Positions 5,453 to 64,000 of a stretch of 64,000 nucleotides of DNA are shown piece after piece. The first letter of the stretch is position 1, and the number at the start of each line of letters is the position of its first letter. Made by a program: the position numbers and the translations under genes. The stretch covers positions 27,342,001 to 27,406,000 of the forward strand of contig CM119376.1 in NCBI GenBank assembly GCA_051294905.1, given 5' to 3'. This DNA is from Botryllus schlosseri (taxonomy: Eukaryota). The notes below the pieces were generated by a model. That model did no database searches, was not told the DNA's origin, and saw nothing but the letters and a program-made list of their open reading frames with translations.

Positions 5453-8069
5453 CTAAGTCTGCCCGGCGTTGTCGGTGCTGTATGTTGTGCATTGACCTCC
5501 GTCCGTTTCTTCGACGCACGTCAATTGTGGCGGATTGTAAACGTAGGCAGTCGTACGTCCCGGGGCGTTCACGCATTTAGCTTCCTCAACGACTCCTGCA
5601 GTTTAAAAATAGCACAGAAGAAATTCGAGAGAGTAGGTTCTGCGTCATTTACCAGCGACACATTTGTAGTACGTTCCGTCGGCGCAGTCCTCTGCTTTAG
5701 TAAAGCTCACTCCGTCGAGTGGTTCGCCGCTTGGATCTGTGCAGTCCATAACATCGGTCTGCAATGGAAATATCCATGAAATATGACTCTGCGATTTACA
5801 TTTTACAACAGTCGTCAAAGACAAGCAAATCGAGTACAACCATAAAGCTCAGAGAATTATCAAGAAGGCACCAATGATCATCATACATGAATAATGAATA
5901 TACTATACTGGCTGACTAAAATCAATATAGGTCTCCCAATGTCGCATGATAAGTCTTTAAAACTTTTAGTTAGGATATTTATAATTGCGATATTTCGAAA
6001 CCTTGAGAGGCTCGCTCGCAATATCAACTAAGCGAAGTTCAGGCGGACATATTTACGACTCATTCCTAACTTCCTTGACAGTATTTATGGGACCTCGCCA
6101 GCTGCCTGCAGTGTTGATAGTTACCGTTAAACAAGCGTCGACGTTGCTGTACCAGTCGCACAGCGTTGTTTCAGGATTATAGACAGTTCCTGGTGCGCAG
6201 TCCCTTTTAATCCCTTCGCCTGTAATGTTGAATATGGATATCGGTGACAACTTTATAATAGATGTATTTTTGATTAAGTGCTTACCATGCACATACTGAC
6301 AATATGTTGAATAACATCCAGGCCCAACAGGGTACCTCTCTCCTTCTGAAACCCCGTGTGCATTGCCGCAATCTGACCAGAAGAACAAAACTACATTTAC
6401 TAAATTTACTCATTACATTTACTTATTATTGAATTTGTTGGTCTACGGTAACATAGACGGTATCATAGGCGACCTTTTTTAGTCAACACAGAATTTTTGA
6501 AAAGTGTCCTCTTTTTACTGATCTCAAAATATGATAACCCTACGGTAACAGTTCCAGAGCTTGCAATCAATTATGATATTTGCCATCGTCTTGAAAATAC
6601 CAGCGCATAGCCAGTAGGACGGAGCGGATCGACAAATTCTTTGGTCCTACTCCGATCCTGTTTTTTCAAGTTATGGTCCGACTCATTTAGGACGGATTCT
6701 AGAAATGACCGTGATCCGGTCCGAAAAACCTCGATAATAATTTATCTATTCACAGGATGGTATTGAATATCGATTAAAACAGTGCAAATAGGAATTTAAA
6801 AGCTCAAAGATCAAACCCAACCTATAGCTGTATTAATTGTGCCAACTTGGACTTTGGATGTCGTTTATTCCCATGAACGTTTTAGTTTCACTAGTGATTC
6901 GAGGGTGAAAGAGGGTAAGGCTGCCGTATTCTTATAAAAAAGTACTGATCCGGCTCCGACCCAACTCCAGCCGTATTAGAAAAAGTACAGATCCGGCGCC
7001 GAACGGGCTCCGACCACAAATGATAAAATCCGACCGGATATCCAATCCGGCTCCGGTCCATGCTCCGCCCTAATAGCCAGATGGACATACGTTTGATTAA
7101 TGTGGTTACATGCTGCCAGTATCTTGCCATATATATCGATTAAATGTATACCTGACGGATATAAAGAACTCGTCGGTGAAGGCGTAGTTGTTGTTGTCGT
7201 GGTGCTTCTGGTAGTACTGGTCGTAGTGGCAGTGGTCGTTGTGCGTGGTTTGGTAGTTGTAGAAGGTTTACGGGTTGTAGTGGTAGTGGTGGTAGGAGTC
7301 GTCGTAGATTGTGTGGTAGTTGTCGTTGTCGGTTTTTCCGTTGTCGTCGTCGTTGTTGTTGTTGTTTTCATCGTTGTCGTTGCTAAAGTCGTAGTGGTTG
7401 GCTTGGTTGTAGTAGTCGCAATAGTCGTAATAGTAGGCGAAGCATCATCTCCAGGGTATCCACTGCTTGGACTCTTGCTGGACCCGCTCTTAGAACTACT
7501 AGGACTCTTACTTGATCCGTATTTCGAGCTTTTCGGACTCTTGCTTGATCCGTATTTAGAGCCCTTCGGACTCTTGCTTGATTTACTTTTCGGGCTGTCA
7601 GGACTTTTGGGAGATTCCGATTTCGAGCCTTTCGTCGTTCCAGTCCCGGGGGAACTGGGACTTTTTCTAGATTTTGAGTCATACCGACTGGAACCGTCTT
7701 TGGATCCGGATTTCGATTTACCGGTAGTCTTAGAAGATTCCGTATCGTAGCGGCCGGGACTTGACGCTGTTTCGTCCGGACTTTTCGAACTTTTAGGGCT
7801 TTTGGTCGACTTTTTCTTAGAACCGCTGCGACCCTTAGTTGACTCGGATCTTAAACTTTTCGATTCAGACCGAGACCGTTTAAGTCGATATAATTTGGGA
7901 CTACTGTCTAAGGCGTCCGCTTCATCGCACAGTTGTGATGTGCGATAAGCTTCGCTAACTGATTAGAACACAAGTATTAGTTAATGATGCCATGTATCAT
8001 GGAAGAATATGCTTTATTACCCATAGTCACGAAGACCAAAAACAGTATCATTGCAATTTGAAGTTTCAT
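5453..8069 (-). CDS. Secreted mucin-like chitin-binding protein (peritrophin/CBM14 x2), paralog 1, 428 aa
   Basis: Exons 8069-8021, 7958-7152, 6372-6286, 6219-6125, 5758-5653, 5595-5453; all GT-AG and phase-consistent (1287 nt). Signal peptide MKLQIAMILFLVFVTMVSEA; RLKR at 7887-7876; Ser/Lys-rich then Thr-rich region. Domain 1 is C-x17-C-x4-C-x11-C-x12-C-x8-C with VYNP..CDW; domain 2 is C-x18-C-x7-C-x9-C-x18-C-x8-C. Confidence 0.92.
6471..6542. mobile_element. Terminal fragment of the gaggac/gtcctc MITE family (cf. 14519, 52874)
   Basis: gaccttttttagtcaac...gaaaagtgtcctc...atatgataacccta matches the end of 14519-14834. Confidence 0.6.
6615..7072. mobile_element. Non-autonomous hAT-type MITE in intron 2 of gene 1
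   Basis: TIRs taggacggagc / gctccgcccta; perfect 8-bp TSD ATAGCCAG at 6607-6614 and 7073-7080; internal tccg/ctccg repeats. Confidence 0.9.
7461..7585 (-). repeat. Coding 30-nt tandem repeat (S-S-K-S-P-x-x-S-K-x-G-like, 4 units) in gene 1
   Basis: ggactctt(g/a)ct recurs at 30-nt spacing; translation SSKSPKGSKYGSSKSPKSSKYGSSKSPSSSKSGSSKSPSSG. Confidence 0.85.
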
Positions 8070-12158: not shown

Positions 12159-15100
12159 TCATCTTTTCTTCAAAGGGCGCCGCACTTTTTTATTATTTTT
12201 CAATGCTCTCTTCTTTCTCTTGCTTGCTAAAATGGAATCATTCAAATTTCTAGAAGATATGAATGAGTCACAAAAATATTGATTTAATTACTTTCGCATA
12301 TAGCTACGAAATCATGTCACAGGTAGTGGAATAAAAGCTCTTTTTTTCAATTGCGGGCTAGGTTCATTTATACTTACTAGCTTTGTCAGTACTGAAGGCT
12401 TTGCATTCATCACCGTCGTTAACGATCACGCACATTCCCATCCACGGATTATAAACATACAATACGGGAAGGCCTGGCGGGGTCATGCACATGACTCGCT
12501 GAGCAACTCCTGATATTAAAAAATTAAGTACCAATGAGTACGTGGTGCGTCTCCGAGTAAGCCTTACGTTACCTTCCCAACATCTATAATAGGTCCCATC
12601 TGAGCAATCCTCGGACTTGGTAAAATCTACCCCAGTGAGTGGCTCTCCACTAGGATCAGTGCAACTCATTACATTCGGCTGGAACGAAGAGTAAAAAGAA
12701 GTAAATCAGGCTTATTAACTTGCGAACCTGAATGATCAATTTCATGTCAATAAAAACTTCATCAGAACAACGTCACATTGTTATTGTGAAATATCATGTA
12801 TCTGAAACGCATATAAAAGCTTGCAGGGGCACAGGTAAAAGGTAATGAAGTTGCAGCTAACAACTTGACTAAATACATAGAGTCTTTGTTCTGTTGTTGC
12901 ATTCATGGTGTGTTTCGATTACAATGGTCATTTTGGTCATAAGTTTTTGTTACCGTCAGAAACACTGCCGTTACGCCTGAGAAATTTTTTCGTAGGAAGC
13001 TATAGGTCCTAAAATGAGATATAAGGACCAATATTACATATGTTAAAAGCAATATGCATGTATACTAGGGCTGTTGAAAAAAAAAACATTTTTCCAAGTC
13101 TTGGCTGCTAGGAGATTAAATCGGCAGGTTGCCTAAAATACGATGCACACCAAATTTGAATCCATTCCAACCGGTAATCGCGCATTTCTAACATTTATCT
13201 TTTTTTTATATATTAAAAAAAAATTCAAATTTACCGGCTATCCCATGAAATTGATACGTTGTCTACAAAAACGACGCAAATCAAATTTGACTCAATTCCA
13301 ACTCGTAGAAACGGAGTTATTCAAGTTTTGCGTTGATAATTCTGAAATCACCAACCGTTTTAAGAGGATTTGTCCTCTTGTTTGACTTGTTTGAAAGTGT
13401 CCTCGGAGGACGCCTAAATTATCTATTTTTTGAGAATTCGTCCTCTTTTTTGAAAATATTGGTGAAATGTACGTGAGAATTCAACTGAGATATAGGAAAT
13501 CAGCACTCAAGTAAGGGTCCGGCGGGTCATTGGGGTGTTGAGGCAGAAAGTGAACCTTTTTTTAGTCAACCAACTATAAACTCGAACTAAATTTACCAAT
13601 TTTTCCGGATTTTTGTCTGGTAATGTAAGTCTGAAAATTTTGAAAATGTGTCCTCTTTTCAGATTTCCCAAATCTCGAGTGCAGTACCCCTTTAATTACT
13701 GACCACCAATTTCGACGATAGGGGTAATAGATGCTTCCTCCCCCTTCAATGGGATGTTTTCGGACCCGGATTTTATCATTAAAGACGCCAACAGGACCTC
13801 GATTGGATCAGAATCCCGGATCCCGAAATCCATACATCTCTAGCAGGCGTATATGGTGTCGGCATTAAACAGACGACGTAATAACAAATGAAAAGAAGTT
13901 GGTACCGGTACCGCTAGGAAGGTTCACCAAGAACTACACCCAGGTGATCGTTGTCTGTTCAGCGCTGGGACTGTATGCCAGTACGTACACCGCAACGTGC
14001 CCGTCGTTGTTCGTAAGACACAGTTCCTTCATAATATCGGCTATCGGCTATCTAAAACCCCTTCTCTACTTTAATCGCGTCTAGGAAGTGAAACAGTGAT
14101 GAAATGACCTTCATCTTTAACTCGAGACCAGCGCAGTGTGCCTTTAACAACGACCAAGGGCAATATACATACCGACTTGTTTAAATTACCTGCGTGCAAG
14201 CATCCACATTGTAATACCAATCGCAATGTCCATTTCCAATTGGATTGTATACTGCTCCTCTAGCACAATCCATTACGTACCCAATACCTTATTAAAATGA
14301 TAGACGTTGTAAGTTCGCATAGCCTCAACTTGAAAACTCGCAATCTGAATTCGGGGTCAAACTTTAATATTGAATCGGAAAACAGTTATTCCTCATTTAG
14401 ACATCCCAAGGAGATTTCAAATGTCGCTATATTTATGTGAGGGGCCATTACGAGACAGAGGTAAGAAGTAACCTGTATTGATTTATTTGGGTTATATCTG
14501 CGACATGTAGACATAGGTTAGGGTTACCATACGTCTCCTTTAGGAGGATTTGTCCTCCGTTTTCAGGTTTTTGAAAATGTCCTCCGAGGACGCCCAAAGG
14601 GCCTCCTTTTTGGAGATTCGTCCTCCTCTACAGCTTTTGGAGCTAAGAAATGGGCATAAATGACGCTAAATAGGAAATTCGTACGAAAGTGACGACCTTT
14701 TTTCAATCAACCAACCACAGAGTCGGGAAGTTAGGAAAAATTTACTATTTTATCCGAATTTTACTCAACAATTCTAAGTCTGAAAATTTTGAAAAAGTGT
14801 CCTCCTTTCCCGACCCCAAAATATGGTAACCCAAGAGGTGTCTGGATAAGGGTGTCCGGTCAATACCGAGAAAACCATTACCGAGAATGCCATTACCGAG
14901 AATGGACACCACCGAGAATGGACATTACCGAGAATGGACACCACCGAGAATGGACATAACCGAGAATGGACACCACCGAGAATGGACATTACCGAGAATG
15001 CAATATATGCAATGCAGGCATGTTATGCACATGAACTGGTCGTGTGTGAGCACCACGTCGTTGCCACATTCGGTATCAATGCTCAGGCATAAATTTATCA

Positions 15101-17987
15101 ACAACGTCAGTCCCAGTAAGCTATATTCTTGACATTGGCCATTCTCGGTAATGTCCATTCTCGGTGGTGTCAATTCTCGGTAATGACCATTCTCGGTAAT
15201 GTCCATACTTGGTAATGTCCATTCTCGGTAATGGCATTCTCGGTATTGTCCATTCTCGGTAATAGTTTTCTCGGTAATAGTATAGAACCCTGGATAAGAC
15301 TTTCAAGTATTAAGATAATCTTTTCAGCATTCAAAACTGGAAGAATTTATATCATGTTGCTTACCATTGACATGTCTGCAAAATCTCGAGTAGCATCCAG
15401 GACCAATCGGATAAAAATATCCATTGGGAAGTCCACTGACATCACTGCAATCTGAAAGTACAATAGCACCCACTAGCATCAACTGCACCGTGTATAAATT
15501 GTTGCTGGTAATTGATTGAAGTTTGACACCCGTGCTTATCTGATTATCGAATCTTCAGAAGCATACGAAAGCTTTTTTGTCAGTAGCTTACCTACGAAAG
15601 CTTTTTTTGTGAGTAGCTTACCTGCAGGCCTCTGTGTGGTCGAAGCCAGAGTGGTTTTGGTTGCTCCACTGTCCACATTATCGCCGTTTTCTGATTCAGG
15701 TGGGGGTTCAGTGGTAGCGGTGCTTTCAGTGGCTTCCGTGGTTGGCGGCATTGTCGTCTGGGTGGTAGTTTCTGGGCTACTGCTCGTGGTAGACGCTGTT
15801 GTAGTAGTGGACTTTGTCGTAGGAGCAGCTGGGGTGGTAGTAGATTTCGTTGTCGACTCAGTGGAGGACTGGGTGCTTTGTGCTGTGGGAATCGCTTCGG
15901 TAGTTGTGGATATCGGCACGGGTTCGGTGGTTGTAGGCTCGGTAGTAGATTGAGTACTTAGCGTAGTTGAGGATTCAGTTCCCACCGTTGTTGTGGAAAT
16001 AGATGGATTCGATTCGACATTGGACGTTGTTTTAGGCGATTCGCTGCTCGATAGTGGATCGGTTTCTACTTCGAGGTTCTCTGTTGTACTTGAAGTTCCT
16101 TCAGTGGTTGTAGATATCGATGATTCAGTTGTAGATAAAGTAACCGTTTCAGTGGTAGTAGTAGATTGTGGTACAGTTTTGTCAGTTATCAGAATAGTTG
16201 TGGAGGATACAGTGCTCTTGCTGGTTTCCGGCGTAGGCTCAGTAGTCGACTTGCTTGTGGAAATTGCTTCGCTTGTGGTGGTTGATTCTAGTGTTGGTTC
16301 AGTGTCCGGCTCGGCGCCTAGAGTAGATGAAACAACTCCGCCGGTACTGGTAGTTGTAGATGCACCTGGTGTCTCAGATGCCTCAATCTCGGGATCGGCG
16401 GTGCTGCTGGTTAATACTATCTCTGCTGTGGAAGACTTCTGCGTTTCAGTACTGGAGATCGTGCTCGTGGATACCGTTGTTGTCTTCGTCGATGTGGTAC
16501 CGGTGTTTTCCGTCTCTGATTCAACCGGCGGTTGGGTACTAGTGTGGACGGTTTCGGGCTGAGTCGTCGTAGTCGGCTCAGTTGTGGTCGGAGTTGTCGT
16601 TGTGGTAGTTGGAGCTGGTGTGGTAGTTGTAGTTGTGGTTGGTGTAGTTGTTGTGGTCGTTGGAGCTGGTGTGGTCGTTGTAGTTGTAGTTGGAGTAGTC
16701 GATGTGGTCGTTGGAGCTGGTGTGGTCGTTGTTGTAGTTGTAGTTGAAGTAGTCGTTGTGGTCGTTGGAGCCGGTGTGGTCGTTGTAGTTGTAGTGGGAG
16801 TAATCGTTGTGGTCGTCGGAGCCGGTGTGGTCGTTGTAGTTGTAGATGCACCTGGTGTCTCAGATGCCTCAATCTCGGGATCGGCGGTGCTGCTGGTTAA
16901 TACTATCTCTGCTGTGGAAGACTTCTGCGTTTCAGTACTGGAGATCGTGCTCGTGGATACCGTTGTTTTCTTCGTCGATGTGGTACCGGTGTTTTCCGTC
17001 TCTGATTCAACCGGCGGTTGAGTACTAGTGTGGACGGTTTCGGGCTGAGTCGTCGTAGTCGGCTCAGTTGTGGTTGGAGTTGTCGTTGTGGTAGTTGGAG
17101 TTGGTGTGGTAGTTGTAGTTGTGGTTGGTGTAGTTGTTGTGGTCGTTGGAGCTGGTGTGGTCGTTGTAGTTGTAGTGGGAGTAGTTGTTGTCGTCGTTGT
17201 AGTCGGTGTGGTTGTTGTAGTCGTTGTGGTTGGAGTAGTCGTTGTGGTGGTTGTAGGAGTCGTCGTTGTTGTGGTTGTTGTGGTAGTTGTAGTAGTTTTC
17301 GGCTGTTGTTGTGGGGTTCCACTACTACTACTACTACTACTACTGCTGCTGCTACTGCTACTGGAGCTGCCCGAACTGGATCTTTTGAATCGTTTAAACT
17401 GCGGACTTTGGGGAGATTTTTCACTTTCTTCCACAGAAGGCGCCCGGAACGCATCGGCCACTATAGTGATAAAATGGAATCAAATTCGCTGAAGTCCATT
17501 TTTAAGGTCATGGTGAAATCAATTTTTGTAAGATTTTCATTTTCTGTCGGTCATATCTTGGCCATGTTTATGTATATCGCAATATTACAAACTTGATTAT
17601 CCCAAGATGTTGAAAATGGACATAAGGCTATACTCTGATTCCACAACGACGATATAATCCGCGTTGAAAATATGTTACTCAGAAATTCTAATTGAAGTTA
17701 CTCTTCCCGACTCTCTCGCCCTCTCCTCACATTAACTTTTGACTGGACAGAACACGCACACACACGTTAAACATACATACATACCCAAGCTATTTTGAAA
17801 ATATTTCAATACCCAATTATGCTGTTATATGTCAGATTAGTTCATACAAATCGAAATAGGGTTAGTGGGCAAATATTCAGACTGATACAGACAGCAGCAT
17901 ATGTTGAGATACAATAAAAGAGTAACTATGTACTTTACCTACGCCGAGAACCAGCACAGCTACTAGAAATGTAGCTAAAATCTTCAT
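12159..17987 (-). CDS. Secreted mucin-like chitin-binding protein (peritrophin/CBM14 x2), paralog 2, 792 aa
   Basis: Exons 17987-17939, 17460-15622, 15451-15365, 14287-14190, 12678-12573, 12509-12378, 12226-12159; GT-AG and phase-consistent (2379 nt). Exons 1, 3 and 5 have the same lengths as in paralog 1 (49, 87, 106). Signal peptide MKILATFLVAVLVLGVVADA; RFKR at 17392-17381; poly-Ser; ~600-aa Thr/Ser/Pro/Glu mucin region; two Cys6 domains; basic tail TSKRKKRALKNNKKVRRPLKKR. The last exon is less certain; without it the stop is at 12364. Confidence 0.92.
13358..13673. mobile_element. TIR-less copy of the gtcctc/gaggac MITE family in intron 4 of gene 2
   Basis: gaggatttgtcctc...gaaagtgtcctcggaggacgcc...ttcgtcctc aligns with 14535-14630 and the reverse complement of 53220-53320. 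Confidence 0.7.
14519..14834. mobile_element. hAT-type MITE (tagggttaccata family) in intron 3 of gene 2
   Basis: TIRs tagggttaccata / tatggtaaccc(a)a; homologous to 52874-53332; TSD not recognisable. Confidence 0.8.
14851..15289. mobile_element. MULE-like foldback MITE whose arms are inverted arrays of a 16-nt unit (ACCGAGAATGGACATT)
   Basis: About 9 tandem units on the left, inverted array on the right, and a ~135-nt unique spacer; 9-bp direct repeat CTGGATAAG at 14842-14850 and 15290-15298. Confidence 0.85.
15564..15622 (-). repeat. Tandem 29/30-nt duplication that duplicates the 5' splice site of gene 2 intron 2
   Basis: tacgaaagc(t)6-7gt(c/g)agtagcttacc occurs twice; minus-strand AG|gtaagc donors at 15621 and 15591. 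Confidence 0.9.
16350..17185 (-). repeat. Recent 486-nt-period internal duplication in the mucin exon of gene 2
   Basis: 16350-16699 and 16836-17185 are nearly identical (EPTTTTQPETVHTSTQPPVESETEN...ETPGAST twice), separated by PAPT-rich short repeats. Confidence 0.95.
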
Positions 17988-18880
17988 ATTCGCTTTACGA
18001 AAAGGTAATGATGCCAAGAGGAATCTTCTTCAAGCTCCTACTCTGATCGGTCTGTCGTATGATACCTAGGCATTGTCACTTAAAGAAACTTTTTGATAGA
18101 CAAAAATCCGTATTTTTTCGTGCCCACTGTAGTCTTTCGCACGCTACCTAATATTGTCAGGTGTTGCTAATTGTTTAACATCTTCAATTTCAATGTGTCT
18201 GCGATTGATGCGTGAAATGGCCCATCAACTAATATTGACTTATCGAAGCACCCATATTGTCATGAATAGAAATTGCTCTGTCTTTGAACATGTCCCCACC
18301 GTTTTTTTGCACGATTAAAATATTTTTGGTACATTTTACCATGACCTGAAACTTCAAACGTTTGTCGTCCGCTTTTCCCATTATCACCAAGTGTATACGT
18401 ACAAATAGACGATCTATTATTGACCAGTATTCCTTTCTCTGACTGCGTTTTTCATGCGAGATGGCGATTTAAAGAAAGACTTTGAGGATTTCATCTCACG
18501 ATTGCTATTGCATTCATAATCTTTATTAGATGAAGACGGCAGTGACGGTTGTTATTGACGTTTCAAAACTGTATTTGGTAAAATTCCAGTTTGCTCCGAG
18601 AAAACGCGACCACCGATCGAGTTCGTTTGGTAGTTTCAATTACTGAGCGTATCTAGACGCTTCCGGCTTACTGGCTATTAAAAGCCTTCAGACATGGCAT
18701 GTTTACTTTACTCACTGGTCAAAACGTAATTGAGACATGACTAACCAACACTCTGGTCATACAGCATACCTTAACATAGTTATAGTTGGAGTAATTCAAC
18801 AATTATCAGGTCATGGTTATGATTTCTAGTCTCAACTAAGTGAATTGGCATTCGGCCTCTCGCTCAGCATGTATGAAATA

Positions 18881-19000
18881 GCACATTTTCGAAGTCATGA
18901 TCCTCCCACAACATTGTCACCAAGTGCAATGAAATCAGTATGGTCGAAAACATACCAGCATAGTATCTTTAATGTGATGGATAACAGGCATTATATCAAT
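18881..19000 (+). repeat. Solo copy of the interior of the MITE at 19473-19987
   Basis: gcacattttcgaagtcatgatcctcccacaac...aacaggcattatatca is nearly identical to 19724-19839. Confidence 0.85.
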
Positions 19001-19472
19001 TTCGGCCTTTGAACGCGTCGCATATCTTCAAATGCACTGCACATACTATATTTTTGAGTATGCCACACACTCAGTAACAGGCCTATACCTAATATGATTC
19101 GATCTCATTTCCTGGAGTTGCAGCAAACTGTATGATATCATTCATCTTCAGAGGAATAGTAATATCGTTTTATATGTGAAATGAATTTTAGCGATTGAAT
19201 TTCACATTGAGAACACAAAAAGCGTTCGTAAAATATATTATCTGGGAAATCCCGCATATTATGCTGATTTGCGACTCAGCCGCGGTCATTAATATAAGGT
19301 GTTATCACCTTCAAGGCTGTGTAATTTCCATTGCTCAACTTTCAGTACAATATAGGGCCACACATCGCTGTCTCGTGTCTCGTTTACAATTGAATATATT
19401 CGCTCTATTTTGTCTCCCGTTGCAGACAGCTTTGCAACAATGAACGGACTCGCGAACAAAAAGAATCCCACT

Positions 19473-19987
19473 TAGGGCTGGGCACAATGATTCGAATACT
19501 CGAATCTGAATCGAGTATTAATTTTAATGATTCGAGTCGAGTAGTAAAAGACGATATTTTTGAGTACTGAAATTATACGATCCGTGCCTCTGAAAGTTAC
19601 TTCATCAACGAGAATTATAGTTCCGATAGTAATTTTCCCTGTCGAACCTTGAATCCTTAGTTGACCGTATCGTAGCATACGAAACATATAATACGTACAA
19701 AGCTACGAAAGTTACTGGAAAAAGCACATTTTCAAAGTCATGATCCTCCCACAACATTGTCACCAAGTGCAATGAAATCGGTATGGTCGAAAACATACCA
19801 TAGTATCTTTAATGTGATGGTTAACAGGCATTATATCATTTGCGGTAGCATAAAAGCTACATATTTGAACTTTGACATATTCCATTATTTTATGACGTCA
19901 TAATGAGTGATCCTCGATCACTCGACTCGAAGCGTATTACGTGATTCCGAATCGAATCACTCAGGTGCTCGATTTTGCCCAGCCCTG
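19473..19987. mobile_element. hAT-type MITE (tagggctgggca family), copy 1
   Basis: TIR tagggctgggca / tgcccagccctg; tcga-rich subterminal repeats; degraded TSD atcccact / atcccgct; homologous to 59076-59591. Confidence 0.88.
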
Positions 19988-20301: not shown

Positions 20302-21435
20302 AATGTCCCTAATATCCTAAATATCATATAAAATGCAAGATCGGTTGAAAGCGCCACCTTTTCCATCCCCCTATTTTAATTTGCTCTTGTTCACAGCAAT
20401 GGTTTCAGTATGTCACAATGTATGGGTAATGCCGCAGCACAGTGGTCCTCAACCACAAAATCCATGATGGTCCGCCAAATATTTTTAACTTATAGACGAT
20501 CCTTCATTAATTAGATAAATGAATTATCAAATTTTAAATTGATTTCGAAATTTGAAACGTATTTTTTGGAATGGTGTCGTAATATAGAATTTATTGTCTG
20601 CTTTGGACTTTGCGTACGTCGCATGCTGCAAGTGTTGTACAAAACTGTTTAAAGCAAAAAAACTCCTTGAGGAACAGCTATATTTGAAAGCTACAAGGAC
20701 ACAGTTAAACAAATTACGTTACATTTGGACGGCACAATTTAGCAGCAGAATAGAGGCTACTAAGCAGCAAACTCGCATTTCTGTCTGAAGAACCAGGAAA
20801 ATCAAACTCAAGTTTGTGGTTTTAACAGCACTTCGCATTACGGGAACTTCGATAAAACCACGTATAATACGTTTAATATCAAAAGGCAGCATTAAATTAA
20901 GTCTCCAATATTTACCTTTAAGTTGAATACATTTGTCGTAATTGTAATATGGGTAAATTTTGAAGGTACGCCAGTCCTTGGCATATATTTTCGTGTTCTA
21001 CCGGTCCGCAAGGTCAAAATGTTGCGTACCACTGCATATATATTGTACTTCAGCGGCATACTGAAATCGTACAATGCAGCGCACTACGCACTACGCTCAA
21101 TGTGCAATTGTAATATTTATTGTTCACAACAAAATCTGGACACATGAGGCAAGAAGCGTTCTTACATGCCGAGCATAGACCATATAGACATACCCGTATG
21201 AACCAAATTGGATTCATAATTCTTAATCGATGGACGTCATCACTATCATTGCATCGCGATGAAATTGTTAAAATCATTTCACTAGCGCTGAAATAAGGAA
21301 AATATAATATTCGTGAAGTTGAAATTCTTCCATTCCCTTTATAAACTCGTGGTGTGCACGTCCTGTAAAGTGTTGAATTCAGGTTACGATGCAGTATATT
21401 TTAAAATCGTTTCCGCGCCACGCACCTCCATCATC

Positions 21436-23295
21436 TCACTCGCATTTACACATGAAACAGTCTCTCGAAATTTGGCAAATGTTCATCGTACCACTGCAGC
21501 CCATCTGGCTCGGGCTGCATCCAGACCAAGTGCTGTGACACAGCGCTCGTGGGCACGCATGTTCACATTCTGACTTTGTCTATACGTAAATAAACGAAAA
21601 ATTGATATACTTATTATTTGGTTCAAGGGGTTTGTGAGATGGATTGGCCTTTCGACTCTATGCGACTTACCATGAAACCATTTGCGTTGCCTGCACATTC
21701 TCCTGCCGGCAATTTGATGCACTTTCTTTCTTCTGAATTGTAATAGAATTGTCCTCGCTTCCCATCGCAGCTATCTCTCTCCACGTTCATGAAGCACGAT
21801 TGTCTACATATATGAAATCATACTGTGAAAAGTAACATGCACGCCATGTTCCTGATTTGAAATAGCTGAAGAGATACAAATTGACCGCTATAGTGCTGTT
21901 CGGGTGGCAATCCACAACGTTTTACTCGATATAGATTTGACTTACCTGTTTATCATAGGTCCGTCGTAGCACTTCATCGACTGCAAAGAAATAATTGTGT
22001 CATTAAATACAGCAAGTACACTCGTTTCAAATTAAATTTTAGATTTATGAGACACGGTGTAGCGATTCTCCATGACGCGCTTTTCTAGATTTAATCGTTT
22101 GATTGATTACCAATTGGTCCAATGTCAAATCTGAGCATCGTTTTGAGGGAATTCAAATGGTGCTGTGAGTTGAACTCCAATTTTTACATTGCCAAGCGTT
22201 CCTGTACACCAGGCCACTGATGCTATAACTTGAGTAGTGTTTATGATTGCCACTTTTAAAAATCGCATCTGAAATTTCACGCCTGAGCTGGTGATGATCG
22301 ATCACAGGCGTAGCCAGGAAGAAAACTTTGGGTTAGGGTGAAATTGTGTAAGGTAATGACGATACATCACGAATACCCATTGCTGCATATAGTGAGAAAG
22401 ATTGACGTCGAAACGTCAAAGTCGAAAATTTGAAGTGCTACGCCATTGTGCATCTTTTATGAAAAGGGATGTCCGGACTACAACAAAATAAAGATTTATT
22501 GAAACATTATTTTAAAACAGCAGCGTAGTGGCCTGCGGTTGAGAGAACAACATCATTTGAAAGACGAAGCAAATGTCAAAACTAGCGACAAGACATATAA
22601 CGAGCGTAACTAACATAAAACTATATTGACAACAGCATCGGTAAGCTATTAGAAAAGTCCCAGAGAAATTGGATAATGGACATCTATAAACTAACTCAAC
22701 CAAATCACGTGTGTGACATATACGGGCTCAATTGCTTTCATAATTACTATTGCAGATTACGGCAGTATCACGTAAGATACACATTTATATGAGTAAGAAA
22801 CTTTTGCGACTGTACAGTGTACCTGAAGGAATACATGATATCATGTACTTTTGAGGTTTGAAATTAACGGAACCAAATGACTGGCTATGCTGCAAAATAT
22901 TGCGATAAAGTGTTACATCCGTACAGCAGACAGGTATACGAGACTGTGAAATGATGTATGGTTACCAGCTGAGGTTATTCATTTACTGGGTGTTGTGGAT
23001 ATTAGGCTATGATGTTTGCGCGGCAGATCCTGTACGTACTCCTAAGAACGAAACTACATGTATGCTCGTCAAGTTCGTGAGCCTTGTGAGTGGGAGATTG
23101 GCACTACAACGAAATCCCCTGCCTCTGGACTCGCTGTAGATCCACGATTTACCCTGCCATCGTATTTACGCCTACGTCTGTTTACGATGTGCAATGCTGA
23201 TTTAAGCCATAAAATACGGCTGCCAACAGTTTGCAACGTATTACAGATTGGTTAAACTGTCTTCATTTTGCTTACTTTAATCGCGTCTTCGGCAT
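21436..23295 (-). CDS. Small secreted Kunitz/BPTI-domain protein with Cys-rich C-terminal module, ~156 aa
   Basis: Exons 23295-23276, 22620-22583, 22268-22188, 22130-22111, 21980-21946, 21803-21671, 21579-21436 (471 nt, phase-consistent). Protein: MPKTRLNFMLVTLVICLVANA-IFKSGNHKHYSSYSISGLVYRNAWQYLTLDQLSMKCYDGPMINRQS-CFMNVERDSCDGKRGQFYYNSEERKCIKLPAGECAGNANGFMTKSECEHAC-PRALCHSTWSGCSPSQMGCSGTMNICQISRDCFMCKCE. The Kunitz six-Cys pattern, FYYN and GNAN.F are clear. The 5' exons are less certain (weak GTTTTG donor at 22582), and the 3' end may extend further. Confidence 0.85.
22305..22448. mobile_element. Small degraded hAT-type MITE in a Kunitz-gene intron
   Basis: Ends caggcgtagc ... gctacgccattg, the same terminus type as 1450-1461; no TSD. 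Confidence 0.45.
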
Positions 23296-24789
23296 CGTCG
23301 AATCGTCGGGTCGATGGTGGTTTCCCGGTAGCTGAAATTACAAGTTTCCATTGTTATATTACAAGACAATTCAATGCGCTCACCCTCACACTTTCGAGGT
23401 TTACTTTGATAAACATAATGAAGACTTAAACGTTGACGTAGCACTTCAGTGCTCAAATGCTTATCTGTCACGAAAGGATTTTGGTGACTGATAAATATGG
23501 AAATAGGTGATCACAGAGGTATGAGTAGCCCTTTGGTCTCACACGTATTGAAGACCATTTCGTCGCTTCGTGAAGGATATCGCTGATATAAACGTGTGCT
23601 CTGCACATAGACATAACAAATTTACTGTGCATTGTCTGGTAGAAATCTTGCAGGGACACTGGGACAATGTCACGAAGAAATAAGTCTAGCCCGAACCCTT
23701 TCCAACTGTGCTATATTTGCACTTCAATTTGTTTCGATGTCCCCAATCCTGATTTGGGGTTTCGATCTTGCAAACCGTAGTTCAGTTTGTCTTGTATGAG
23801 TGTAAAGATATTATCTGTAATGTTTTGAAACGGTAGGTCCATATCTTACCCACACCAAATTGGATACTCGCTGGACATTACTCCTCTAGGCGCCACAACT
23901 ACTGACAATATCATTAAAAAACATATATCGCTGGAATATCAGTATCATGAACGCCAATATAATTAGTCTCTAGCTGCATCAAACGTGGTCATGAGCAATC
24001 ATGTCCAGTGTCCACCTTTTCCTCATATCTCGGTAATCCCGCTTTAGTAAAATTTTAGGTTTTATTGCCCGATGTCAATGACTGAAATAGGCTGTCGTAT
24101 GTATAATGCTATCTATACTTAGTACCTACCAACACTCAAACATATGACGATCATTACGATAAATGTATACGTCTTCATGATTGTAAACTGCTGAATCTTC
24201 GAATCCCCCAGTATTTTTAGGAACTAGGTAGTCGGTACTTAGCAAAGTAACTGATACAGTCTAAAGATATACTTTTATACTTCTTACTGATGTTGTAAAA
24301 TATGACCATCTTGATATAACGGTATACTTGGCACTCCTTCTTGTCAAACAAAACGGGTGATCATCAAGAAGCTGGCACAGCATATTTGCCTTTGCTGGTC
24401 TATTGTGTCTCGTGTGAGCTGGGTTCTCATTTCAACTTGGCCAGTACGGAAATGCAAAAAAGTTATGATATACTCACAAGAAATATGGACAAATGCTGGT
24501 CTATTCAATTGCAACTACTTCGACAACAATAGTTTTCTGGAAAAGCGATGTCCAAATCCAAAATGTGCTTACAGATGATTTTTATGGTGCATGTTTATGG
24601 TCGTAGTACATGCTACATCTGTGTGGATGGCGAAACAATTTCATTTTCTAACGATTTCAATTTCTATTCATAATTCACACGGGAAAATCGCGGCAGTCCG
24701 TGGTTCAGGTCACCATCTATTTGTTAAACACTGGTGCAGCATTCGCATCAACACTGTGGCGTCATAAGGAGACTTTCTCTCGGCTGCTA

Positions 24790-46961: not shown

Positions 46962-48108
46962 CAGTGATTCCCAACCTGTGGTACGCGTACCACTAGTGGT
47001 ACGCGAAGGTCCTTCAGGTGGTACGCGAGTAGATTCCGTATTTTTTTCGACCGAAGGGAGTTATCAGTTCACGTGGGGTTGATTTTGAGTTTTTTTTGAA
47101 GCCGTCGTCGTCCTGGTAAGGTGCGTCCGTGGTAAGGAAGCCTACGTCAAAGAAACGAAACCGACTTGTTGCGCCCCTGCATGACTTTCGATGCGGTGTG
47201 AGCAAACGTATGCCACCATAGTGTCCTATATGGTGTGGACACAAGCAAATCTCACGGCTCAGTATAATTGGTCTACGTCACACTTTCCACTTAGTCAAAG
47301 GCAACTTTACGGCCCTTTTACACCGGCTTGCCGAGCGCTAAATTCGATAAAACGGGTATCAATGGAAAGCTGCTACTGTACTGATTCCGAAATTCTAAAT
47401 TTTATTTTGCTCATGGTCCTCGAACCTCCCAAAATCTGCTTCGAATTTTGGATTGTGATCGAGTTTTAAAATTGTGACGCAACAATTCTGTCTGGCAAAC
47501 CGAGAGTGTAGCTAACAGAGTTGTTGTGTCACAATTCAAAACTCTATCACAATGCAAAATTCGAGGCTGGTTTAGGGGGGTTCTAGGACCATGAGCAGAA
47601 TAGAATTTATATTTTTGTAGTCAGTACAGCAGCAGCTTTCCATTGATACCCTTTTTCCGCATTTAGCGCTCGGCAAGCCGGTCAAAAATGGTCTTAAAAT
47701 TGCCTTTGACCAAATGGAAAGTGTGACGTAGATCAATTTCACTGAGCGGTGACATTTGCTCGTGTCCACTGTCCACATCCACACCATATAGGACGCTATG
47801 ATGCCACGCATCGACCGGCTAGTGCAAAATAAGCAATACAGCCATCGCATTTAATAAATATACTTTTGTTGTTTATTGTTATTTCAATATGTTGTTCTTC
47901 TTGTGACTGGCGGTGAAAAAACAATTCCATGCATCCCATCAAGGCATCAACCCTGACTGGTGATGCCTAGTTTAATAGAACTTGTTAACACACCTAGCTC
48001 ATGTCAAATACCTGATTATGACGTCATAAATGGTGGATGTAGGTGGTACGCGAGCACTGCATAAAACTTCAAAATGGTACGTGGGCGGAAAAAGGTTGGG
48101 AACCACTG
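46962..48108. mobile_element. Charlie-like hAT MITE carrying a nested foldback element
   Basis: TIRs cagtgattcccaacc / ggttgggaaccactg; perfect 8-bp TSD CCATAGGC (46954-46961, 48109-48116); ggtacgcg subterminal repeats. Confidence 0.92.
47217..47800. mobile_element. Foldback element (Galileo/P-like), short copy, nested in the hAT MITE
   Basis: Ends catagtgtcctatatggtg / caccatataggacgctatg; about 270-nt inverted arms nearly abutting; 7-bp TSD ATGCCAC (47210-47216, 47801-47807). Confidence 0.9.
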
Positions 48109-52873: not shown

Positions 52874-53332
52874 TAGGCTTACCATATTTCGGAAATGAAA
52901 AAAGAGGACACTTTTTCAGAAATTTCAGACGTGCAAAACTGGAGAAGAATTCTCAAAAACCGGTAAATTTTTCCCACTTCATGATCGGTTGACTAAAAAA
53001 AAAAAAAAAGGTCTTCACTTCCGCTCAGAGCTCAAAATCACGTTTTTCACTCCACATTGCCGGGTGGGTGACTAAAAAAGAAAAAGAAAAAAAGGTCTTC
53101 TTTTCGCTCAGAGCTGAAATCACCGCTTTTCCCTCCGAAATACCCGCCGGAGCTTCACTTCTGCACTAATTTGCGGCATATCACTCGCAATTTGCTCTAA
53201 ATCTGACCTAAATTTTCAAAAAAGAGGACAAAATCTCAAAAAAGAGGACAAAAGGGCGTCCTCCGAAGACACTTTCAAAAAAAGTCAAAAAAGAGGACAA
53301 ATCCTCTTAAAAGAGGACGTATGGTAAGCCTA
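52874..53332. mobile_element. hAT-type MITE (taggcttaccata family)
   Basis: 13-nt perfect TIR taggcttaccata / tatggtaagccta; perfect 8-bp TSD TCATATAT; gaggac subterminal repeats. Confidence 0.92.
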
Positions 53333-56312: not shown

Positions 56313-56799
56313 TTTACAGTGCACTGTGCAGTGCACTGCTGTATACGTTAAGTTTTAAGGCAAAAATTATGCTATGAGGTTGACGGATATGATATTACAT
56401 TCACATGGTACACTGCTGATTGTTACATCAATTTCGAAGTCAAGGCTTATGCTATGGGTCTGGCTGATATGGTACTACATTTACAAGGTGCGACAAATTA
56501 CCGCTGGTATATCTCACTAATGATATCAAGTGTTTGCTATAGTTGCCATTGCGTATAAAGTTTAGTAGACGCATCCCCGAATGCTATTAACGCATGTTGT
56601 GTTGGTTTTCCAATAACATTAGGCTCACCTATCAGCCCAAATCGCTATTGCGAGATTTTGTTGGAAAGCCGTAGTAGTATCGGTCTTTGTTGTTTGTTGT
56701 CAACAGGGTTCGTTAAAGAGGTCATACAATTCGTATTACCGCTTTATACAGACTTACAATATATCTTTGTTGGATGCGTGTATACAACAACGATCGTAT

Positions 56800-58905
56800 C
56801 ATAGTGTCCTATATGGTGTCGACACAAGCAAATCGCACGGTTCAATGAAATTGTATCACGTCACAGTTTCCATTTGGCTACAGGCAATTTGACGGTGATT
56901 TTTGACTGGCTTGCCGGGCATTAAATTTGATGAATCGGGTATCAATCGAAAGCTGACTCTGCACTGATTACGAAAATATAAATTTTATTCCGCTCGGGGC
57001 CCTGGAACCCCCACAATCAGCCCCCAATTATTCATTGTCGAGTAGATTGGCAGTGTGACGCAACAATGATGTCTGGCGAAACGAGAGACACGCTCAAGAG
57101 CAAGGATGCGGCCGAGCGGCGAGAGTGGGATCAGCTGACGTCGCGGCAATAGCGATGTGCAAACGCGCGACAGAGAAACGCTGCGCTGTTGATACTTTTT
57201 CTATGCGTTTCGGTACAAGCGAGCACACACCAGCCTTTCCTTGACTTGTAAGGGTAGAACTGGGTCCACAGAATGTATTAGGGCCCTACCAATTTTCGCG
57301 CAATATCCTTCAGCTGATAAAGATATGTAGGCTACGTCTAAGTAGTCTACATTGGATATGTCAGATTATTATGATATCGATTGCCTTAGCCCGCTTGTTG
57401 CGTAGGGCTCCAGAGACACGTCGCGCTGTTGATGGCGGGTGTCGATACTTTCTATAGTCGCTTTTATGGTCAAGTGTGAGCAGGGAGCATTGAGCATGAG
57501 CATACATTACAAGCTTTTATTTGATCCGTATGGGTAGGACTTGGTCCGCGAATGCAGCAGGTAAAATGTTGATTGTTGAATAAAGTTTAACAGCAGGAGT
57601 GTCGAATTAGACTGGTATCGCTGTCCGGATTCAATCCGTTACTAGAAAGCTTGCGGGCCATACCTGCCAAATGGTTCCAAAATGTTACCACCAAATTCAT
57701 ACCTTTGTTTTTCACTGGAACATATCTGATATCACTATAAACGTTGACGTTGGAAGTTGGTTTAGCATTTTTCAATCACCAAATAGTTTTTTTGAATGCC
57801 GGGGACCTTTTGCGTCAAAAGTAATACAGTGGTATCACAGATCGAATTATATTCATTATGTAGCCTGTATGTATATTCCTAATGTAACTTACGTAATACG
57901 GATTTGCAGTATTTTTTTCGCATCTGTGAATAACTGAATGTCCATTGTCCATTCGGCCCAACAGAGTTTGCACTTTTTGCCTTCTCGGAATTTGGCAAGG
58001 TCACCGACGTGGTGCTTATGGGGACTAGAGTGAAAACTCAACACTGTAGTTGTATTACTACAATATGATATCTTTACATTATCTAAATTTGCTGTCTTGA
58101 GTGAATCTTATTACTTGAAAGTATATTTTTCTTACTAGAAATATCTCTAACAGCTGAAGGATTGCGCGAAAATTGGTAGGGACCAAATACATTCTGTGGA
58201 CCCAGTTCTACCATTACAAGTCAAGGAAAGGCTGGTGTGTGCTCGCTTTTAGCGAAGCGCATAGAAAAAGTATCAACAGCGCCACGCATCTCTGGAGCCC
58301 TACGCAACAAGCGGGCTAAGGCAATCGATATCATAATAATCTGACATATCCAATGTAGACTACTTAGACGTAGCCTACATATCTCTATCAGCTGAAGGAT
58401 ATTGCGCGAAAATTGGTAGGGCCCTAATACATTCCGTGGACCCAGTTCTACCCTTACAAGTCAAGGAAAGGCTGGTGTGTGCTCGCTTGTACCGAAACGC
58501 ATAGAAAAAGTATCAACAGCGCAGCGTTTCTCTGTGGCGCGTTTGCACATCGCTATTGCCGCGACGTCAGCTGATCCCACTCTCGCCGCTCGGCGGCATC
58601 CTTGCTCTTGAGCGAGTCTCTCGTTTCTCCAGACATCATTGTTGCGTCACACTGCCAATCTACTCGACAATGAATAATTGGGTGCTGATTGTGGGGGTCC
58701 CAGGGCCGCGAGCGGAATAAAATTTATATTTTCGTAATCAGTGCAGAGTCAGCTTTCGATTGATACCCGATTCATCAAATTTAATGCTCGGCAAGCCGGT
58801 CAAAAATCACCGTCAAATTGCCTGTAGCCAAATGGAAACTGTGACGTGATACAATTTCATTGAACCGTGCGATTTGCTTGTGTCGACACCATATAGGACA
58901 CTATG
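56800..58905. mobile_element. 2.1-kb foldback element with ~634-bp TIRs and 7-bp TSD (Galileo/P-superfamily-like, non-autonomous)
   Basis: Arms 56800-57433 and 58272-58905 are near-perfect reverse complements starting CATAGTGTCC; extra 240-nt-period tandem copy at 58141-58282; TSD ATCGTAT (56793-56799, 58906-58912); no transposase ORF. Confidence 0.92.
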
Positions 58906-59075
58906 ATCGTATCATGTTACGTTCACGTGTTGGGCTTATGGATTTCCAGGATGTAGTAAATTAGTGAGTGCTGTGTTTTGTTTCGCTTGAGTGCCTCCGG
59001 TGATCGCAATTTCTAGACGATTATGTCCTATTCGAAGCGACACCGTTAGCGCACACGGGCTATTTCGGTTATAAC

Positions 59076-59591
59076 TAGGGCTGGGCAAAATGATTCGAGT
59101 ACTCGAATCTGAATCGAGTATTAATTTTAATGATTCGAGTCGAGTAGTAAAATACGATTTTTTCGAGTACTGAAATTATACGCTCCTCGCCACTGAAAGT
59201 TAATTTATCAACGAGAATTATAGTTTCAATACTCATTTTCACAGTTGAAGCCTTGAAACCTTGATTGGCGGTATCGTAGCATACGAAACATATAGTACAA
59301 AGCTACGAAAGTTACTGGACGTAGCACATTTCCAAAATCATGATTATGCCACAGAATTTTCACCAAGTGGAATGAGATCGGATGGACAAAATAATACCAA
59401 AGTATCATTTATGAGATGTATAATAGGCATTATATTCTTTATGGTGGCATAAACGGTACATATTTGAACTTTGACTTATTTTATTCAGTTATGACGTCAT
59501 AATGAGTGATACTCGATTACTCGACTCGACTCGAAGCATATTACGTGATTCAGAATCGAATCACTCAGCTACTCGATTTTGCCCAGCCCTA
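59076..59591. mobile_element. hAT-type MITE (tagggctgggca family), copy 2
   Basis: 16-nt TIR tagggctgggcaaaat / attttgcccagcccta (last base matched); perfect 8-bp TSD GTTATAAC. Confidence 0.92.
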
Positions 59592-62954: not shown

Positions 62955-64000
62955 TCAGTGAATTTGATCCAACTGTCTAATATTCGTCACAAAGTCTTTG
63001 GCCTGGAGAATGCCCTCCAAATAAAAATCAGTTGGTGACGCCTGGTAGAGACCTTTCTCCCAGTTGATTTTCGAGAAATCGGCTTCGACCGTCGCAGTTG
63101 TGGGAAACATCGAGCCATGTGGGTCCAAAGAACTGTCGCTCGTCAATAATGCGCTTGAAAGTGACGTCCATTTTATATCAGACAGACATGGATTGGAATT
63201 GGTCTTCGATATTCTGTATCTACTCAGGTGTCCACTTGTTCGACAGCCCACCCCGGTGTTTGTCGATCAATTCACTGATCTGCAAATAAAGTAGCTTACA
63301 TATATGTATCACTCTTGTTTATATTATTAGAATCTAAAAGAGCAAGAAGTGTTTGTTCTGTCCTGCCTACGAGGTTGCACCACTTGATGTGGTAGACAGG
63401 GCAGAACCCTTTCATTGTCGGCAACTTCAATTTTCTTTATGCCGTCGATGAGCCCTGCTATAAGGATCCTGGCTGCCTCGAACGTGGACTGCTTCTCTTC
63501 TTCGTCGATATTCTCGAGAAGGTCGAGGACTGCACAGTGCACACTCTGACCCTCCACAAAATTGCGTGACTCAGTGAACTTGAAATTCCAGCACCCTCTG
63601 ACCAGAGGACATTCCTTGCCGCAGGTGTCATTGTCCCAGTCCTCAGCGGGCACCGAGCTCGAAGGCGTTCGACCAGGCGATGGAGCTCATCCTGATGCTC
63701 CACGATCAGATGACCAAGTCCCTGAATCTTTGTGACGGTAGTGCTCAGCTCTGTGGCCATGCACTCGAGGATGATAAGTTGGATCCACCAATGCAGCGGA
63801 GGTGCACAGGCCGGACTTTTATCGTTTATAACCCCGAGGAGTTTGGTACGGTGTCTAGGCAACCAAGTGGTCATCTTCTTAATTGACAACCAACACGTGT
63901 CTACAAACTTGGGGCACATACTTTTCTTTTCCTGGATCAAGTCCTGTTGCCGTTGGAGGTAGCCATTCAGTCCCATCATCGTGTGGACGAAGTTATTGTT
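62955..64000 (-). pseudogene. Decayed hAT-like transposase of a second subfamily, truncated by the window end
   Basis: Fragments in three frames: MCPKFVDTCWLSIKKMTTWLPRHR...KSPACAPPLHWWI...KIQGLGHLIVEHQ; ...VLPCLPHQVV; ISELIDKHRGGLSNKWTPE*IQNIEDQFQSMSV*YK; MFPTTATVEADFSKINWEK...TDFYLEGILQAK (hATC-like). In-frame stops at 63222-63220 and 63180-63178, plus frameshifts. Confidence 0.85.

Follow-up and report, generated by a model that had tools for sequence, protein, structure and literature searches.

Several Kunitz proteins are known that keep the scaffold, carry an altered reactive loop and have an activity other than trypsin inhibition. Domain 2 of boophilin, with alanine at P1 (the residue after the second cysteine), had no inhibitory effect on any proteinase tested (PMC2230226). 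FhKT1 of Fasciola targets cysteine rather than serine proteases (PMC5016662), and certain Kunitz proteins of cestodes and sea anemones are channel or TRPV1 ligands (PMC5325619, PMC5192466). Cysteine proteases or ion channels are also the targets of Kunitz proteins whose P1 residue is unusual or whose surface is basic (PMC5016662, PMC5325619). A natural Kunitz transcript with aspartate at P1, Kun_Lyd-37798, has been published for the blister beetle Lydus trimaculatus, and its authors place it far from a canonical inhibitor (PMC9312475). In SmKI-1 of Schistosoma mansoni, one Kunitz domain is followed by a C-terminal domain without similarity outside a narrow lineage (PMC7846107). Here we describe a gene on the minus strand of a 64,000-nucleotide stretch of the Botryllus schlosseri genome (assembly GCA_051294905.1, contig CM119376.1, positions 27,342,001 to 27,406,000; this whole stretch is the window, and all positions below are counted from its first nucleotide). 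The gene encodes a Kunitz domain with Asp at P1, followed by a tail containing seven cysteines.

Like boophilin domain 2, FhKT1 and the cestode and sea-anemone ligands, the protein retains the scaffold and has an altered reactive loop; none of these is reported to have an Asp at P1 together with a P-A-G-E-C secondary loop and a cysteine-rich tail. The beetle Kunitz proteins, compared by description, keep the Y-G-G-C signature and the six cysteines, and no cysteine-rich tail is reported for them (PMC9312475); given the beetle transcript, an Asp at P1 is not unprecedented. SmKI-1 shares its architecture with the gene described here, namely a single Kunitz domain plus a lineage-specific C-terminal domain. 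Its native P1 residue is Arg. A point mutation that places leucine at P1 is described as enhancing the inhibition of neutrophil elastase, on which evidence SmKI-1 is an active inhibitor (PMC7846107). Nothing indicates that the SmKI-1 tail resembles the seven-cysteine tail found here, for which our search found no credible relative. A natural Asp-P1 Kunitz domain and a Kunitz domain joined to a lineage-specific C-terminal domain are therefore both already known; the full set of Asp P1, P-A-G-E-C loop, extra N-terminal cysteine and seven-cysteine tail without credible relatives was not found among the known systems compared.

The explanation we favour, with moderate confidence, is that the gene encodes a secreted Kunitz-scaffold protein that is not a classical inhibitor and would bind another partner, the tail being an added disulfide module.

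The Kunitz domain and its seven-cysteine tail

The demonstrated part of the gene consists of three 3' exons on the minus strand, which encode a member of the Kunitz family, its altered loop residues and a tail without credible relatives. The exons are as follows (a slash marks the splice point):

21980-21946, minus strand: exon A, 35 nt; acceptor tttctttgcag/T, donor CAG/GTAAGT (donor score 12.7)
21803-21671, minus strand: exon B, 133 nt; acceptor tatatgtag/, donor ATG/GTAAGT
21579-21436, minus strand: exon C, 144 nt including the TGA stop codon (21438-21436); acceptor tacgtatag/
21116-21121, minus strand: possible polyadenylation signal AATAAA, a match to the motif only; first such motif beyond the stop codon, at a distance of 315 nt

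Splice-site scores, here and below, come from weight matrices that are rough, approximate tables not trained on the source species. The introns between exons A and B and between exons B and C are 142 and 91 nt long and are both GT-AG, the exon phases are compatible (0 to 2, 2 to 0 and 0 to stop), and once joined, the 312 nt form one open frame of 103 codons with a single terminal stop. Exon A encodes S-M-K-C-Y-D-G-P-M-I-N, including a lone N-terminal cysteine, plus two nucleotides that are needed by exon B. The 5' border of exon B is forced, because only one AG is available and the frame is closed by a TGA five codons upstream of it. The 103-residue product has an isoelectric point (pI) of 7.4 and contains 14 cysteines, as counted correctly in an initial annotation of the locus. 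The same annotation was right that the gene escapes a track of open reading frames (ORFs): all three exons are missing from lists of ORFs of at least 60 amino acids, and with a lowered threshold only a 55-amino-acid, ATG-started fragment of exon B appears. A repeat comparison within the window revealed no repeat overlapping 21.0-24.3 kb, and no second Kunitz-like or tail-like segment is present in any frame of the 64 kb.

Homology searches were performed with exon B, exon C (47 amino acids) and the 57-residue join of the two. The protein segments concerned are:

21671-21803, minus strand: exon B, encoding Kunitz Cys1 to Cys4, the reactive loop R-D-S-C-D-G-K-R and the secondary loop P-A-G-E-C
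21553-21579, minus strand: first 27 nt of exon C, encoding the Kunitz end T-K-S-E-C-E-H-A-C with Cys5 and Cys6
21436-21552, minus strand: rest of exon C, encoding the tail of 38 residues with seven cysteines, followed by TGA

Exon B alone matches Pfam family PF00014 (Kunitz_BPTI) with 29.6 bits over profile positions 2-42 of 53, while exons B and C joined reach 42.5 bits (E = 7.7e-11) over positions 2-52, against a gathering cut-off of 21 bits. Removal of the B-C intron thus restores the missing end of the domain, as seen from the rise in score. By this profile match the domain is a PF00014 member, which bears out the initial proposal. The gaps between its cysteines (x8, x15, x7, x12 and x3) are the exact Kunitz spacing, and the x12 and x3 gaps appear only once the 91-nt GT-AG intron is spliced out.

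The nearest solved structures by sequence are those of SmCI domain 3 (4bd9_B), textilinin-1 (3d65, 3byb), boophilin (2ody), bikunin and TFPI domains; matches among the PDB sequences also include alpha-dendrotoxin and mambaquaretin. With the serine-protease inhibitor domains of the family, among them SmCI domain 3, textilinin-1 and boophilin, the domain shares the six-cysteine spacing and the structural core, comprising F-Y-Y-N, C-x-G-N-A-N-x-F and, in the C-terminal helix region, E-C-x3-C. The contact loops differ. In HMMER alignments, the residue at P1 is Asp (codon 21766-21764), aligned to the Arg of textilinin-1, where the inhibitor domains have Lys or Arg; this agrees with the initial annotation, and so do the two replaced motifs. 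Upstream of P1, D-S-C stands in place of G-P-C, so that P3 and P4 are Ser and Asp rather than Pro and Gly, and the secondary loop reads L-P-A-G-E-C where F-x-Y-G-G-C is usual. P1' is Gly. The extra N-terminal cysteine and the 38-residue tail also set the protein apart from the inhibitor domains. As marks of the canonical inhibitory subclass (inhibitors of trypsin, chymotrypsin and elastase) we used a P1 that is Lys or Arg, large hydrophobic or small aliphatic, G-P-C before P1 and a Y-G-G-C secondary loop; judged on its residues, the domain falls outside this subclass both by its P1 Asp and by its loop framework. The Kunitz core is slightly acidic, with a pI of 5.7 and seven Lys and Arg versus eight Asp and Glu residues. 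A single-sequence AlphaFold2 model of the domain has low confidence, with a predicted local distance difference test score (pLDDT) of 51.3; its strands (19-22 and 27-30) and helix (46-52) are compatible with the Kunitz fold of beta-hairpin and C-terminal helix; with this model, Foldseek matches to Kunitz structures are non-significant (E at least 0.28, template modelling scores 0.2-0.3).

In the tail, the gaps between successive cysteines are x6, x6, x6, x5, x2 and x1, exactly the C-x6-C-x6-C-x6-C-x5-C-x2-C-x-C pattern given initially. In the non-repetitive parts of the window, 12 of the 16,478 stop-free windows of 38 codons contain at least seven cysteines, and six of these 12 belong to exon C, which also holds the sole 38-codon window with eight and has the highest cysteine density of the non-repetitive sequence. 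The binomial probability of at least seven cysteines in a single window of 38 codons is about 4e-4. Three other loci of the window reach seven cysteines per 38 codons by chance, and cysteine density by itself is suggestive rather than proof. The stronger argument for a real tail is that it is contiguous and in frame with Cys5 and Cys6 within one exon.

No credible relative of the tail was found in Pfam, among 1.84 billion representative proteins or among the PDB sequences. Exon C matches no Pfam family at an E-value of 1 or below. Its two matches among the representative proteins are to 1,200-residue repeat proteins, with scores summed over eight to nine repeats, and were rejected as spurious; the matches among PDB sequences are PsaC-like, with E of at least 0.1, and were attributed to chance. 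ShK (PF01549), which had been considered for the tail, was not matched by exon C in the Pfam comparison, and the seven cysteines with their spacing differ from the six-cysteine ShKT pattern. The single-sequence AlphaFold2 model of exon C has low confidence (pLDDT 43.5).

The 5' end of the gene

Upstream exons are expected, because exon A cannot start a protein with a signal peptide. The initial annotation had proposed seven exons, four of them upstream micro-exons starting at ATG 23295 and encoding a clean signal peptide. We enumerated open GT-AG chains from this ATG to exon A, with exons of at least 18 nt and up to four upstream exons, and obtained 125,115, of which 3,610 have a short hydrophobic, signal-like N-terminus. 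The most signal-like of these has poor splice sites (donor -4.5, acceptor -5.8). The four micro-exons, one such chain with weak sites, are thereby left unsupported, and as thousands of equally open chains exist, the signal peptide read from ATG 23295 is no evidence for the model. ATG 23295 falls within an exon with better flanks (23331-23276), whose reading frame is a different one; what had been taken for exon 1 is the 3' 20 nt of this 56-nt exon.

A different upstream structure appears more plausible. Its candidate elements are:

24249-24279, minus strand: candidate core promoter, TATAAAAG (24279-24272) plus an initiator (Inr)-like TCAGTT (24254-24249), assigned a function by motif
24178-24130, minus strand: candidate exon 1, 49 nt; ATG, MKTYTFIVMIVICLSV plus 1 nt; donor TTG/GTAGGT (score 6.5), phase 1
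23464-23384, minus strand: possible extra exon, 81 nt, phase 1-1; acceptor score 1.7 (about the 95th percentile), donor score 9.0 (about the 99th); inclusion uncertain
23331-23276, minus strand: candidate exon 2, 56 nt; putative charged linker or pro-region ending in TGKPPSTRRFDDAEDAIK; acceptor taatttcag/C, donor AAA/GTAAGC (score 7.3)

The peptide read from ATG 24178 is the most hydrophobic ATG-initiated one in the 8.6 kb upstream (Kyte-Doolittle 3.76), and S-V-A precedes its putative signal cleavage site, with 14 cysteines remaining after the predicted cleavage. The TCAGTT starts 25 nt after TATAAAAG, and the candidate promoter pair is located 71-74 nt upstream of the ATG. The pattern TATAAA-N16-26-TCAGTY has a single match on both strands of the window, where 0.42 would be expected by chance; that the match adjoins a signal-like exon is the argument for considering it a promoter. 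Candidate exon 2 converts phase 1 to phase 0 and joins exon 1 to exon A without a stop. Among the 198 GT sites of the 3-kb region that was scored, the donors of both candidate exons rank above the 95th percentile. The 81-nt exon would add 27 residues and one cysteine, and the frame is open with or without it. We infer the five-exon model from ATG 24178 (417 nt, 138 codons plus stop) as the best available one.

Other starts were considered. A single first exon at ATG 22268 has a weak donor and a polar h-region, ATG 22616 has no usable donor, and a model skipping exon A was considered but not adopted. At 22188-22268 on the minus strand, the ATG directly follows an acceptor-like tttcag and opens an 81-nt frame (MRFLKVAII...TLGN), which ends at a weak phase-0 donor that could join it to exon A; this alternative first or internal exon was judged less likely than the exon at 24178.

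In schistosome micro-exon genes, the coding sequence consists mostly of very short symmetric exons with lengths that are multiples of three. The exons of the five-exon model (49, 56, 35, 133 and 144 nt) include one multiple of three and show no series of symmetric micro-exons framed by longer terminal exons, and the initial label of micro-exon gene does not suit them: lengths of 35-144 nt, mostly not divisible by three, are those of ordinary small exons.

Surroundings of the gene

The window looks eukaryotic, with about 40% G+C, no N and no CpG depletion (observed/expected 1.11). It is gene-poor and repeat-bearing, with few long ORFs, and contains neither tRNA genes nor Rfam matches at gathering thresholds. 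Other features are:

6056-6388, minus strand: match to CBM_14 (peritrophin-A chitin-binding), 24.2 bits
6979-7962, minus strand: open frame of 328 codons, Ser/Lys-rich and then Thr-rich
12367-12705, minus strand: cysteine pattern resembling another chitin-binding domain, with no Pfam match
14876-15283: tandem array of a 16-nt unit (CCATTCTCGGTAATGT, about eight copies) within short inverted repeats; copies of its flanks (72-81%) at 13359-13660, 14539-14809, 52876-52974 and 53135-53282
15536-17461, minus strand: open frame of 641 codons, Thr/Pro/Ser-rich and mucin-like, with a 486-nt unit present 1.9 times at 95% identity and nested repeats of 15-105 nt
18875-19986 and 59076-59590: dispersed repeat family with several blocks of 82-96% identity; a further copy of 83 nt at 18875-18957
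47210-47769: copies (80%) related to the inverted repeat at 56798-58907
56798-57433 and 58272-58907: large, foldback-like inverted repeat; arms of 636 nt with 98% complementarity, separated by 838 nt
63461-64000, minus strand: open frame of at least 173 amino acids, running off the end of the window, with no Pfam family

The segments at 6056-6388, 6979-7962 and 12367-12705 and the mucin-like ORF suggest one or more genes of peritrophin/mucin type on the same strand as the Kunitz gene and downstream of it. Together with the undepleted CpG and the TATA/TCAGT-type promoter motif, the CBM_14 exon and the Thr-rich mucin-like ORFs would by themselves have led to the guess of an arthropod-like ecdysozoan with little DNA methylation. 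On the strand opposite the mucin-like frame, Cys/Gly/Val-rich ORFs are present that are artefactual. The dispersed repeat at 18875-19986, whose end is about 1.4 kb away from the Kunitz stop on the downstream side, is together with its relative at 59076-59590 probably a non-autonomous transposable element. The frame at 63461-64000 may be transposon-derived; in the databases its sole relative is a fragment of 87% identity, carried by an ENA metagenome contig of 669 bp (ERZ928222).

Possible roles of the protein

In the explanation we favour, a small multi-exon gene running on the minus strand from about 24.25 to 21.1 kb would encode a secreted, disulfide-rich product of about 120-140 residues, with four parts in order: a signal peptide, a short linker or pro-region rich in charge, a single Kunitz/BPTI domain and the lineage-restricted 38-residue, seven-cysteine tail. 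Secretion is suggested by the location of the window's sole TATA plus Inr pair just upstream of the most signal-like ATG exon, spliceable in frame to exon A, and by the even cysteine count (14) after predicted signal cleavage. The Kunitz scaffold is intact. With both of its protease-contact loops remodelled, the protein would most likely not inhibit enzymes of the trypsin, chymotrypsin or elastase type in the canonical lock-and-key manner. More probably, the rigid scaffold and the extra cysteine module bind a non-canonical site of a protease or a target that is not a protease. By parity, the odd cysteine of the tail probably pairs with the odd one ahead of the Kunitz domain. The first exons, the secretion, this disulfide linkage and a non-inhibitory binding role are what we infer from the sequence.

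Trypsin and chymotrypsin form their weakest complexes when the P1 side chain is acidic (PMC3407930, which cites Helland et al. 1999), and BPTI variants with acidic P1 have the lowest association constants with all four serine proteases tested (PMC9312475, PMC3407930). The same variants, on the other hand, still bind trypsin, and most strongly at low pH (PMC9312475). This observation weighs against a non-inhibitory role, and several of our own results likewise weigh against the favoured explanation. The upstream structure is one of 178,511 open chains starting at ATG 24178; the 81-nt exon is equally splice-like, and its inclusion would leave 15 cysteines after signal cleavage, an odd number; and the AlphaFold2 models are uninformative for both exon C and the Kunitz domain. 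In a word-indexed protein search with the joined 57-residue domain, no candidate shared three five-residue words, and an exact 32-mer and degenerate peptide patterns had no match in metagenome contigs. The absence of homologues weighs less than it seems, because the source genome seems to be missing from the protein collections, in which the window's large ORFs have no entry either.

The low-pH binding of acidic-P1 BPTI is also what makes a true canonical inhibitor conceivable, with its Asp P1 adapted either to a serine protease whose S1 pocket is basic or acid-preferring, or to enzymes of trypsin type that work in an acidic setting, for instance in part of a gut. Its scaffold is intact, the Gly at P1' is small, as canonical binding needs, and the neighbouring mucin-like and chitin-binding (CBM_14) genes are of a gut-lining type, although this is context only. 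We nevertheless regard such an inhibitor as unlikely: P1 is not the only change, as the secondary contact loop has P-A-G-E-C for Y-G-G-C, the association constants of acidic-P1 variants are the lowest, and there is no known candidate target protease. Caspases are cysteine proteases, and we know of none that is a Kunitz target.

Non-inhibitory Kunitz proteins acting on channels are well documented (PMC5325619, PMC5192466), and alpha-dendrotoxin and mambaquaretin are among the PDB matches. A toxin-like blocker of an ion channel or receptor, comparable to the dendrotoxins, conkunitzins and cestode or sea-anemone Kunitz proteins, with the cysteine-rich tail as an extra pharmacophore, would also fit a small, cysteine-rich, lineage-restricted gene with a possible dibasic pro-region. 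Characterised K+-channel blockers, including the dendrotoxins, are strongly basic. The slightly acidic Kunitz core described above differs from them in this respect and disfavours the ion-channel option of the initial annotation; moreover, the gene is present as a single copy in 64 kb rather than as a tandem family of toxin type, and it lacks a known venom or secretory-gland context. We therefore consider a channel blocker quite improbable.

A comparably small chance is given to a role as component or guardian of an extracellular chitin/mucin matrix, of peritrophic-matrix or cuticle type, in which the Kunitz domain and the tail would be cross-linking or protective modules. The mucin-like ORF, the Ser/Thr-rich ORF at 6979-7962 and the CBM_14 exon are situated downstream on the same strand, and a cysteine arrangement that looks unpaired could permit intermolecular disulfides. 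Proximity is not co-regulation, however: the genes are about 4 kb apart, with a dispersed repeat in between, and the Kunitz gene, which lacks a chitin-binding motif, has a stop and a candidate promoter to itself.

That the locus is a non-working gene, an unexpressed or decaying Kunitz relic with a tail read by chance through a former 3' untranslated region, is highly improbable: the lack of a homologue in the word-indexed protein search and metagenome contigs and of a transcript or annotation, the loss of key consensus residues of inhibitory Kunitz domains and the three other loci that are equally rich in cysteine by chance would agree with it, but the three 3' exons are open, in phase and flanked by canonical GT-AG sites, the donors of exons A and B being very strong, all six scaffold cysteines and the structural core are kept, the tail cysteines are regularly spaced, at a density of low binomial probability, and the total cysteine count is even.

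Returning to the secreted, non-classical Kunitz protein that we favour, a more far-reaching version of it can be formulated. The tail might be a new, independently folding disulfide module, stapled via the lone N-terminal cysteine across a Kunitz scaffold with its protease-binding face rebuilt around an acidic P1; the protein would then be a two-module binder with a target class new to Kunitz proteins, and would found a lineage-specific family. The chance of all this being correct appears rather slim.

The gene is an example of how small cysteine-rich genes in short exons slip past ORF-based tracks. Taken alone, it adds one more lineage-restricted predicted secreted cysteine-rich protein and leaves current understanding unchanged. 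If expressed, it would be a natural case of a Kunitz scaffold in which neither protease-contact loop is canonical any longer and to which an unrelated cysteine-rich module has been added, and would be useful for understanding how a very common inhibitor fold is re-purposed.

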